From sequence record PV400809.1: 64,000 bases of DNA; one strand, 5' to 3'. Below are positions 42,917 to 46,031 of this stretch, in pieces. Positions within the stretch are counted from its first letter, which is position 1; every line of letters starts with the position of its first letter. The notes under the pieces are model-generated. The model was not told the DNA's origin, made no database searches, and saw nothing but the letters and a program-made list of their open reading frames with translations. Made by a program: the position numbers and the translations under genes.

Positions 42917-42945
42917 TAACCTGGGGGCTCTAAGCCCCCAGGTTA
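42917..42945 (-). terminator. 13-bp hairpin followed by TATG
   Basis: TAACCTGGGGGCT-cta-AGCCCCCAGGTTA. Confidence 0.7.
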
Positions 42946-42954
42946 CCCATTCTC

Positions 42955-43503
42955 TTAACGAAGTTTAGACAATTGATCTAGTAATGCATCCATAGAAACC
43001 GACTCCGAGGCGGTTCGTTTACCCCCACTCTTCGCCTGTTTCTCTTCCTCTTCCTTCAGATGTTCTTTCTCCATTACCAACCGTTTTTCCCGTCCCTTTT
43101 GAACGGCCTTAATCAACGTGTCTGCACAGTTAGCGGGCAATTCCAAGTAATCCTTTAAGGGCAGGTATTCATCCAGCCGAAAAGTCCCGTAATACTCTCC
43201 TATGCTCTCATACGAGAAGGGGTGGTAATATCGGACTTCAGACGGAAAGAACTTAATCGATTGGTGAGGGGGGAGATTACGGGGTGAGACATATCCCATG
43301 TTGATGTCATGCAACGCTTGGTTGTTCAACAGGATAGTCTCTTCCTTGAGACCACTGAGATCTTGCTTCTGGAGGTTTAAGTAAACCGCCGAGAACTCCG
43401 GATTGTGAATCGCTTTACCGCCAATCAGGAGAGGGCTTCGTTGTTTACCTTTTGACGCTCCATCGCCAGATTCATCAACATCAGCTGGGAATGGATAAAA
43501 AAA
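42955..43503 (-). CDS. -1 frame extension of the 574-aa ORF (candidate T part of a G/GT-like pair, ~180 aa)
   Basis: frame is open from TAA at 43539-43537 to the stop at 42955; no ATG/GTG/TTG in the 58 codons after the slippery site; YLPLKDYLELP motif. Confidence 0.65.
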   Translation of the reverse strand, partial: FFYPFPADVDESGDGASKGKQRSPLLIGGKAIHNPEFSAVYLNLQKQDLSGLKEETILLNNQALHDINMGYVSPRNLPPHQSIKFFPSEVRYYHPFSYESIGEYYGTFRLDEYLPLKDYLELPANCADTLIKAVQKGREKRLVMEKEHLKEEEEKQAKSGGKRTASESVSMDALLDQLSKLR

Positions 43504-45149
43504 CTCATAAAGGCATCGATCGGGGTATACCCGAGTTTACGATCTTCTTGGTGAGCATCCGACTCCGTACCGCACTTCGGACACACGAAGTTACGGACAC
43601 CAATAAAGGTCCGGGTCAGATAAGGCGCCTTATTGTAGACGAACAACACCAAGTTCTTATTCATCACCTCATCGGTCAGCAGGGAGTCCATAAGGCCTTT
43701 ATTGAACTCGTTAGGGTCTTCCTTGGCTCGTTTAATGACCTGGGGTTCACTGTCTTCGCCCGGAGGTGGCATAATAGCGAACTCTTCCACCCAGTGCATG
43801 TACTCCGCTCCACTCAAGCTGTTAAGCAGAAGGAGACGTTGCTCTTCCAGGTCTTGTTCCGTGTTGACCTTGTTGCTAATATCCGCCAACTGCTTATCCA
43901 CCCGCCCTACGAAATAGTCGAAGGTAGCGAAGGCATCCGACAGACTGGGAGGTCCTACTTTCAGACGAATGGACTGATCCTCGTTGTACACGTACCGATT
44001 GTCCATCCCGTAGGTGGACTGTTCGATCATCTTGAGGATTTCATCAACGGTGTGTTGTTCACGCCCACTGAAGATATTACCAAAGAAAGCGGCTTCTTCA
44101 TCGGTTTCAATCGACGGACGGCGCTGCACCAACTTAGTCGGATCGATGAGATCGAACTGATACCAGTCACAGCTGGGGTTCATGCAGCGGAGGTCCATTT
44201 GGACGCCGTCATCCGTAATCGACGCCAAGAGACCTGCACAGATCACCGGCATGTCCGTAATACGGATCACCTTGCTGAGGTCATCGAAATCCGCCAGGCC
44301 TTTGACACTGCTGCTGACCAAACGGGGCTTCAACCAATCCCAGATCTCAATATACCCCGCAATGTAAGACAACGCCATGGCGTTCCCACCGACCCGCCGT
44401 ACATACCCCCGAATACGGCGGTTAATGTTGTTGATGAGATCAGCGACTTCCAGTTTCTGAGGACGTTCCCACGTAATACTCAGGAACGAATTACGCAGCA
44501 GTTGGTTATACTGGTATACACCCCCCGACGAACGAATGGTCGAGCGAATCATGCGATCTGCAATACTCAACCCTTTCTTATTCACTGACGGGGTCTTACC
44601 CACGATATCGGTCGTGGTGAGTTTATCACACCGGCGCGAGGCGTTGGTAATATTCTCTTCCCGCACCATGCGGGTACGAAGTTGGAGGTTCTCCTGAAGA
44701 CTGTTCATGAACTTGAACAGATCACTAGCGGTCTTCTCCAACTCATTGGGATTCACATCCGGGTAGTTCTCTTGAACAAAGGCATCCCAGTCTTGCTTAG
44801 CCGATGCAAAGACTGTTGGGGAAACCTCCCCTACCTTATTCAATTCTTTGAACGTGTTCCATGCACTCCAGTTGGTAATCAGTTCAGCCGCTTTCTCATT
44901 CTCTTCTTTACCAACCCCCAGGAAGATACTGGTGAACCCCTTAGCTCGATCGTCTTCAACCAGTTCTTTGGTAATGGGGTTGAGCGGCTCCACCACCTCC
45001 TTCATGGGTGTATTCTGAGGCGTGTGGGTATCCATGAAGCCAAAGTGGCTGGAAGGCTCCGTTTTGGGAATCGTTTGTTCAACGGCTTTGCTCAACTCCG
45101 AAGGGGGAGTCAGTTCAGGGTTTTCGTTCGGGGTTACATTCTCAGACAT
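43425..45149 (-). CDS. conserved protein (phiKZ gp77-like, 574 aa) with two Cys pairs; candidate tail/baseplate-hub assembly chaperone
   Basis: CMNPSC and CPKC motifs; AGT TTT TTT slippery site near the 3' end; synteny. Confidence 0.7.
   Translation of the reverse strand: MSENVTPNENPELTPPSELSKAVEQTIPKTEPSSHFGFMDTHTPQNTPMKEVVEPLNPITKELVEDDRAKGFTSIFLGVGKEENEKAAELITNWSAWNTFKELNKVGEVSPTVFASAKQDWDAFVQENYPDVNPNELEKTASDLFKFMNSLQENLQLRTRMVREENITNASRRCDKLTTTDIVGKTPSVNKKGLSIADRMIRSTIRSSGGVYQYNQLLRNSFLSITWERPQKLEVADLINNINRRIRGYVRRVGGNAMALSYIAGYIEIWDWLKPRLVSSSVKGLADFDDLSKVIRITDMPVICAGLLASITDDGVQMDLRCMNPSCDWYQFDLIDPTKLVQRRPSIETDEEAAFFGNIFSGREQHTVDEILKMIEQSTYGMDNRYVYNEDQSIRLKVGPPSLSDAFATFDYFVGRVDKQLADISNKVNTEQDLEEQRLLLLNSLSGAEYMHWVEEFAIMPPPGEDSEPQVIKRAKEDPNEFNKGLMDSLLTDEVMNKNLVLFVYNKAPYLTRTFIGVRNFVCPKCGTESDAHQEDRKLGYTPIDAFMSFFIHSQLMLMNLAMERQKVNNEALS
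43497..43503 (-). other. candidate -1 programmed frameshift heptamer T TTT TTT
   Basis: seven A on the plus strand; phasing X XXY YYZ in the 574-aa frame; -1 frame continuous with the downstream ORF. Confidence 0.7.
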
Positions 45150-45161
45150 ACAAACAGTCCC

Positions 45162-46031
45162 TTACTGGGGGTTAATGACAGGATCGTTGGAAATAGCGAT
45201 GAATTCACCGACCTCTTCCTTCTCAGGGAAGGGGAGGTTATCACCCGGGATCTCTTCAGGGGAATCTGGGAGTTCCTGCTCCAGGGTGTGCAATTCGTTA
45301 AAGACGTCATTCAGCCGGCTCTCACCGTACAGCTGTTGGATAACCGTAATACGTTCACTGTGAAGTTGACACATGTAATCGTAGACAGACAGGCCTTCAG
45401 GTTTGTGTTCAACGGCATAGGCTTCGATCAGATCGCCCTGTTGGGTAATGATAGCCAGAACCGGTTCCCCAAACTCCTCACTGAGGGCTGCCATGACATC
45501 AGCCAGGTTAAGGACGACTTCAAAGTAATCCTCGGGTTGTTGACCCGCTTCATGCAGGGTCGTGACGACTGAGACATCTTCCGCAAACTCCACCACTTTG
45601 CGTTCGTAGTTCTCCAGTAAGGTACGGTCGTCCTCACTGATATCGAAGCGGTGTTCTTCAACCAGACGGTTGTACACGATCACCCCACTGTGGAGCTTAA
45701 TGGTGACGGTAATCATGTCGTTGATGGCATTGAGGAGTTCTTCCCCACTGAAGAGCTGGGGGATGTCCTCATCACCCGTCAGCTTCATCTGTTCAGCCAG
45801 CTCAGCCAGACGTTGACGGTTATTAATAAGGTCACGCACCGAGAAGGCTTTGTTTTCACCCCTGACCTTATCGTACAAGGCATCTTTACTCAGGACCTCC
45901 CCCTGGTAGCCTTTACCAAAGTCCTGTCGGAGGTAAGCGTCCTGGATGTTCTTAGCCCGTTGTTTTTGTTTACTCACTTGCTTGCGCTTATTGAGTTTCT
46001 TAACCCGACGCTGTTGCTGTTTAGTCGACAT
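45162..46031 (-). CDS. hypothetical protein (289 aa), basic N-terminus and acidic body
   Basis: AGGGA SD, ATG start. Confidence 0.75.
   Translation of the reverse strand: MSTKQQQRRVKKLNKRKQVSKQKQRAKNIQDAYLRQDFGKGYQGEVLSKDALYDKVRGENKAFSVRDLINNRQRLAELAEQMKLTGDEDIPQLFSGEELLNAINDMITVTIKLHSGVIVYNRLVEEHRFDISEDDRTLLENYERKVVEFAEDVSVVTTLHEAGQQPEDYFEVVLNLADVMAALSEEFGEPVLAIITQQGDLIEAYAVEHKPEGLSVYDYMCQLHSERITVIQQLYGESRLNDVFNELHTLEQELPDSPEEIPGDNLPFPEKEEVGEFIAISNDPVINPQ

Follow-up and report, generated by a model that had tools for sequence, protein, structure and literature searches.

A probable programmed -1 ribosomal frameshift joins two annotated genes of the nucleus-forming phage family Chimalliviridae

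Layout of the gp47-gp48 locus

The DNA analysed here (the window) is a stretch of 64,000 nucleotides (nt) from sequence record PV400809.1. The region of interest matches Pseudomonas phage vB_PaeM_GXNNE2 at 100% identity and phage EL (Elvirus, Chimalliviridae) at 98.3%, and carries on its minus strand the equivalents of EL gp47 and gp48, both of which are annotated as 'hypothetical protein'. The phiKZ-like nucleus-forming phages serve as model systems and are considered for phage therapy; a gene-by-gene catalogue of their core genome exists. We examine the junction of the two genes, where the reading frame of gp48 opens inside the end of gp47 and a run of seven T forms a candidate site for a -1 ribosomal frameshift.

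The larger gene, open reading frame 1 (ORF1), approaches its end with the codons ATG AGT TTT TTT ATC, which are followed by a further 22 codons and TGA. The T7 run at positions 43503-43497 is phased X_XXY_YYZ in ORF1. The -1 frame opens after a TAA located 11 codons upstream of this heptamer and runs to the TAA at 42957-42955, giving 180 sense codons when the count begins at the heptamer's last base. A preliminary description of the window had reported both the in-phase heptamer and the open frame, and both are confirmed. A slip at the heptamer would produce a calculated long product of 551 + 180 = about 731 amino acids (aa). The +1 frame at the EL-like site is open for just 9 codons.

The -1 frame contains no ATG, GTG or TTG ahead of the TTG at 43329, about 56-57 codons past the heptamer. 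The long start-less stretch had also been noted in the preliminary description; its figure of 58 codons and our placement of the TTG at the 57th differ merely in how codons are counted. A scan of the coding strand for promoters and terminators found none between the two ORFs. The heptamer is treated here as a recoding signal of an intact gene and not as a break, and the parts of the locus are listed on that basis in Table 1.

Table 1. Coordinates of the gp47-gp48 locus in the window.
Feature	Position	Strand	Remarks
Complete gene, putatively recoded: ORF1 plus -1-frame extension	42955..45149	-	two genes in GenBank, EL gp47 and gp48
ORF1, zero frame, 574 aa + TGA, short product (EL gp47)	43425..45149	-	phrog_4585; homologue of phiKZ gp77 and SPN3US gp39
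C-terminal helix of ORF1	residues 546-573		predicted in the AlphaFold2 (AF2) model
Open -1 frame, stop to stop, 193 sense codons + TAA	42955..43536	-	matches phrog_19747 and phrog_24181; alignable family-wide
Overlap open in both frames, 109 nt	43428..43536	-	contains the sole in-phase heptamer, T_TTT_TTT
Annotated 'intergenic gap', 95 nt, ORF1 stop to annotated TTG	43330..43424	-	-1 frame stop-free and coding-like
Annotated small gene (EL gp48), 124 aa, TTG start	42955..43329	-	conserved core of the extension

Conservation of the frame relation and slippery site across Chimalliviridae

Relatives were collected with tblastn, using the two pieces as separate queries, which returned ORF1 homologues in 69 phage records and the -1 piece in 46. 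In several records the -1 piece matched from its first residue, overlapping the end of the ORF1 homologue. The junction set consisted of 17 GenBank relatives, 8 metagenomic relatives at 41-57% identity and 4 deep metagenomic lineages, to which the distant junctions of phiKZ, pEa_SNUABM_11, Noxifer, PhiPA3, Goslar, RSL2, RAY, JM-2012 and SPN3US were added. The comparison thus covers 39 distinct sequences from more than 20 genera, with ORF1 identity down to about 20%, and includes phiKZ gp77/gp76.4, SPN3US gp39/gp40 and the corresponding pairs of Goslar, RAY, PhiPA3, OBP, and Vibrio and Aeromonas phages. The phiKZ pair had been named gp77/gp78 in the preliminary description; it is composed of gp77 and the re-annotated gp76.4, and gp78 is the gene upstream. 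In two EL-group records the ORF1 homologue is found in two or three pieces: that of PQ287644.1 (HHBS8_1) matches piecewise with one additional frame change, and that of PQ516283.1 (vB_PQ1) is rearranged or partial. This suggests assembly or sequencing problems in these records.

As a check on the proposed frameshift, the preliminary description had named conservation of the heptamer in relatives with the second ORF always in the -1 frame. The comparison bears this out. The small gene lies in the -1 frame of ORF1 in all 39 distinct sequences, and the layout is identical in 13 of 13 loci from IMG/VR. In each of the 39 the -1 frame is already open ahead of the ORF1 stop and remains so until the small gene ends, extending 149-190 codons past the site, while the +1 frame is mostly short (often <35 codons, maximum 98). 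A canonical in-phase heptamer is present in 34 of the 39, in the form T_TTT_TTT or T_TTT_TTC and once T_TTT_TTA. In the first 36 sequences the site is located 33-84 nt ahead of the ORF1 stop, with a median of 66 nt.

The stretch of -1 frame that contains no start codon measures 21-85 codons among the relatives. The chance that it would contain no stop is about 10^-67 if the sequences are taken as independent, a value that exaggerates the strength of the evidence because they are related. Length changes across the annotated gap all preserve the frame, every indel being a multiple of three. The annotated starts of the small gene vary between ATG, GTG and TTG, with products of 69-182 aa and a gap that ranges from -136 to +236 nt, and there is therefore no conserved initiation site. 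In Erwinia phage RAY (gp266/gp267) the small gene is annotated from a -1-frame ATG upstream of the slippery site, with a 136-nt overlap with gp267, which shows that the annotated starts are arbitrary.

Codon choice at the site differs from that in the remainder of the gene. Phe codons elsewhere in ORF1 comprise 206 TTT and 562 TTC (27% TTT), whereas the first Phe codon at the site is TTT in 36 of 36 sequences, among them one relative in which none of the 25 other Phe codons is TTT. The codon preceding this Phe, which encodes S, N, A, T, L or V, has a T as its third base in 33 of 36 sequences, compared with a third-position T frequency of ~0.3 across the ORF1 gene.

Both frames around the site carry signs of coding. 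Differences per site in the overlap zone are 0.42/0.36/0.43 by codon position, the roughly equal constraint on all three positions that is expected from dual coding. In the annotated gap the values are 0.57/0.52/0.68, which is the coding pattern of the -1 frame in an alignment that was guided by the -1 translation and is biased in this respect. The -1 peptide contains conserved motifs within the overlap, ahead of any start codon, first [YRH]-P-x-P and then R-[SG]-x-[PF]-L. The conserved core of the extension lies in the annotated small gene, which has the motif region H-P-[WF]-S ... L-x-[DE]-[YF]-L-x-L-P and a charged tail. The zero-frame tail past the site is conserved as well. EL/OBP-type relatives have 21-28 aa here, whereas phiKZ-type phages and the deep lineages have fewer, with a minimum of about 8-11 aa. 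The AF2 model places this tail of ORF1 at the end of a long helix. With both ends conserved in this way, the short and the long product both look functional.

A profile search of 1.84 billion proteins gave 155 homologue clusters. A fused homologue long enough to contain the extension occurs neither in these clusters nor among 23 close homologues, and nearly all of the 155 clusters terminate 5-40 residues beyond the Phe-Phe position. The sole record with the pair as a single ORF is that of Enterobacteria phage SEGD1 (KU726251.1, gene SEGD1_042), in which the C-terminus of the 795-aa ORF is homologous to the -1 pieces of relatives. Over the gene pair the SEGD1 sequence is one base longer than that of SPN3US, and every other record of this group has two frames. 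The single ORF is probably a sequencing error or a recent variant. Because it differs by this one base from all its close relatives, we excluded SEGD1 as independent proof that the two pieces belong together.

Interpretation of the site and alternative explanations

EL gp47/gp48 (phiKZ gp77/gp76.4) are likely to be one gene that is recoded through a programmed -1 ribosomal frameshift: no relative examined has lost the T-run or the -1 frame that lacks a start. The preliminary description had put forward such a frameshift, giving a short and a C-terminally extended protein, and the sequences of the relatives support it. Most ribosomes would stop at the ORF1 stop codon and release the 574-aa short form with its 23-residue helical tail. 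A minority would slip back by one base on the two Phe codons of T_TTT_TTY, both tRNA-Phe re-pairing with UUU in the process, and would go on to read 180 codons in the -1 frame. In the resulting long form of about 731 aa, the terminal helix would give way to a linker rich in Pro, a conserved domain of ~100 aa and a tail of charged residues. We infer, as the simplest reading, that the slip is ribosomal. An RNA stimulator seems not to be needed; with the heptamer as the only signal, the long form would make up a low and constant fraction relative to the short one.

If this is correct, every public genome checked wrongly shows two genes in place of one core gene, the small one with arbitrary starts. 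Proteome databases, interaction screens, essentiality maps and structure predictions would then lack an isoform of about 730 aa, and this conserved core isoform (gp77-76.4 in phiKZ) would be absent from the databases, annotations and solved structures that were searched. In hosts as different as Pseudomonas and Vibrio, the site would also be a clean natural case of a -1 signal that functions with no recognisable RNA stimulator. The preliminary description was aware of no account of this frameshift in nucleus-forming phages; a full-text literature search found none either, with subscription-only papers lying outside its reach.

Several observations weigh against a frameshift at this site. RNAalifold predicted no consensus pairs for 12 junctions, and the 70 nt downstream of the heptamer show no excess folding relative to shuffled sequences (mean z = -0.14 in 35 sequences; z < -2 in 3 of the 35). 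An upstream Shine-Dalgarno (SD)-like tetramer occurs in 0 of 39 sequences against a background of 8%, and the efficiency of the slip may therefore be low. Five of the 39 relatives lack a canonical heptamer; these retain a T5-T6 run on a Phe codon, on which one tRNA-Phe would still be able to re-pair. Because of the relatedness of the sequences, none of the probabilities given here is a true P value. AF2 modelled the extension poorly, with a predicted local distance difference test score (pLDDT) of 43. The purine-rich stretch ahead of the TTG in the window, described below, indicates that the second gene might also start independently.

Rfam contains no match at the site. The preliminary description had pointed to a possible stem (TCCAT..CCAG / CTGG..ATGGA), which begins 1 nt after the heptamer. 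It is the minimum-free-energy fold but is not significant against shuffled sequences (z = +0.45) and is not conserved, and it was rejected as a conserved element.

Among the alternatives, transcriptional slippage survives best, although we consider it improbable. The phage or host RNA polymerase would add one U on the T-run in some transcripts, from which the same long protein would be made, as a one-base insertion leads to a frame identical to that reached by a -1 ribosomal slip. The site is a homopolymer of 5-8 T and no stimulator of ribosomal slippage was found, both of which are compatible with this explanation. For their late genes, chimalliviruses use an unusual multisubunit polymerase of their own, which may or may not copy such runs faithfully. 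However, useful slippage by bacterial polymerases is known from runs of about 9 or more; runs of 5-7 are short by comparison, and the run has been lengthened in no lineage. The conserved codon phase T_TTT_TTY matters to tRNA re-pairing but not to a polymerase, although it is not fully independent evidence because the Phe-Phe dipeptide is itself conserved.

It is much less likely that gp47 and gp48 are two independent genes, with the small one translated from its own start (TTG 43329, or ATG 43299, which is conserved in the EL clade) and the open -1 frame and T-run arising as by-products of the Phe-Phe dipeptide and the ORF1 tail. Every GenBank record does annotate two genes, and the methionine of an N-M-G-Y motif is conserved in the EL, RisingSun, FishSpeaker and Miami group. 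The preliminary description had found no well-spaced SD sequence for the small gene, which is not quite true of the TTG: the purine-rich AAGGAAGAG is located 9-13 nt upstream of it. Nevertheless, no start position is conserved family-wide, and the start-less stretch is free of stops in 39 of 39 sequences despite many indels, with its peptide conserved. Synonymous choice at the site (TTT, and a T in the third position of the codon before it) is fixed and runs counter to the gene's codon bias. A single frame relation in more than 20 genera is also not expected of independent genes.

It is scarcely credible that a single 731-aa gene was broken in two by a sequencing error in the homopolymer or by a recent frameshift mutation. 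T-runs are error-prone and the SEGD1 record does read as a single ORF, but the identical split is seen in 39 independent assemblies and isolates obtained with a range of technologies, as well as in every other record of the SPN3US group; the zero-frame tail is conserved in length, sequence and stop, and the 155 clusters contain no fused form.

Protein products and comparison with known systems

ORF1 belongs to the profile families phrog_4585 and phrog_8054, both of unknown function, and PHROGs returned only families of unknown function for the two pieces. Sequence searches of Pfam, NCBIfam and the Protein Data Bank (PDB) with both pieces and with the family profiles gave no usable match, and the family profile did not match any PDB chain. 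Four Cys residues of ORF1 (C322, C327, C523 and C526) are invariant, which suggests a zinc site. A few GenBank records call the ORF1 homologue a putative baseplate or baseplate hub assembly protein. Others label it a 'putative ZipA-like cell division protein' (RisingSun gp53, ZPAH34 gp061 and LAh10), a name that we rejected as neither profile nor fold searches support it.

The AF2 model of ORF1 has a pLDDT of 79 and a predicted template modelling score of 0.76. No fold match was found for it in the PDB. In BFVD, the chimallivirus homologues are followed by a protein named 'Baseplate hub assembly protein, bacteriophage T4-like' (E = 1e-3, probability 1.0), with 'Baseplate hub assembly chaperone' and 'Baseplate hub subunit' among the further matches. 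Over all matches of this baseplate type, E ranges from 1e-3 to 0.5 and probability from 0.4 to 1.0, with template modelling (TM) scores of 0.24-0.30 relative to the query and 0.44-0.51 relative to the target. A T4-type hub assembly profile was not matched by any of 23 members in Pfam, PHROGs or NCBIfam, even at E <= 10. Of the resemblance to T4 gp26/gp51 that the preliminary description had considered, a weak structural component (BFVD, E = 1e-3) thus remains and a sequence-profile match does not. The model weakly suggests that the ORF1 fold resembles that of T4-type baseplate hub assembly proteins, which we regard as a lead and not as membership.

A study of the Goslar virion, in which 28 proteins were modelled, does not mention the homologues gp81 and gp82, although absence of mention is weak evidence. 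This and the negative PDB searches fit a non-virion assembly factor without proving one. The 'gp77' of the Goslar paper is a different protein and was rejected as a family member.

In the G/GT pair of phage lambda, the long product is made in a low and fixed proportion to the short one, which the heptamer alone determines. A -1 frameshift conserved among the tail assembly chaperones (TACs) G and GT of tailed phages was reportedly described by Xu, Hendrix and Duda in 2004. The gp47-gp48 pair would share several features with lambda G/GT: slippage by -1 at a heptamer shortly before the first ORF ends, a second ORF without a start of its own, two N-terminally identical products in a presumably fixed ratio, and no requirement for an RNA stimulator. 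In both, the layout is conserved despite divergence in sequence, and the gp47-gp48 products, like those of G/GT, may be absent from the virion. In contrast, ORF1 is four to five times larger than its G counterpart (574 vs about 100-150 aa) and contains the four-Cys site. It matches no TAC family in Pfam or PHROGs, and its only TAC fold match has an E-value of 0.99. The gene is situated among replication and transcription genes instead of between those for the tail tube and the tape measure; in EL it lies between those for an RNA polymerase beta subunit (gp44) and a DNA polymerase (gp51). Annotated neighbours in relatives also include a virion or head protein and, in phiKZ, a helicase. The assignment to the G/GT family made in the preliminary description does not hold, as ORF1 is not a member by size, by fold and profile, or by gene position.

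T4-type baseplate hub assembly proteins (the gp26/gp51 class) are like ORF1 in the BFVD fold matches and in some GenBank names. They differ in being half its size, in the low TM-score (0.28 relative to the query) and in the lack of a profile match. To our knowledge, no frameshift has been described for this class. In T7, a -1 slip in a U-rich Phe context near the 3' end produces 10B, a minor extended form of the major product 10A. Here too, -1 slippage late in a long ORF would add a C-terminal module to a minor fraction of the protein; the T7 protein differs in forming the capsid shell, and its extension is short. The E. coli dnaX gene (tau/gamma) likewise uses a -1 frameshift to make isoforms with a shared N-terminal body and different C-termini. 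Its shifted product is the shorter one, and the site is flanked by strong upstream and downstream stimulators, whereas at gp47-gp48 the shifted product would be longer and no stimulators were found.

We infer that the two isoforms cooperate as non-virion assembly factors, possibly for the baseplate hub. A more tentative proposal, which we hold to be possible but doubtful, is that a large zinc-binding protein and its extended isoform act as the functional counterpart of the TAC pair at the baseplate hub in Chimalliviridae, and perhaps in other T4-like or jumbo myoviruses without a recognisable G/GT. A stimulator-free U_UUU_UUY slip would set the ratio of the two forms and would have been kept since the origin of the family. 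If the frameshift is real, the pair also offers a lead to the factors that assemble the baseplate and tail of chimalliviruses, both of which are very large.

Synteny with the gene upstream of ORF1 (window 45162-46031, minus strand; EL gp46, phiKZ gp78) is kept throughout the family. The homologue of this gene often abuts or overlaps the start of ORF1, which suggests that the two form a conserved co-translated module.

On the other side of the locus, a perfect 12-bp G+C-rich hairpin is located at window positions 42917-42945 on the minus strand, in which TAACCTGGGGGC and GCCCCCAGGTTA enclose a 5-nt loop. It lies 9 nt past the stop of the small gene and 4 nt ahead of the next ATG, that of the EL gp49 homologue. 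The terminator scan did not list this hairpin because it has no T-tract. It may be a terminator for the phage polymerase or an element that protects the RNA end.

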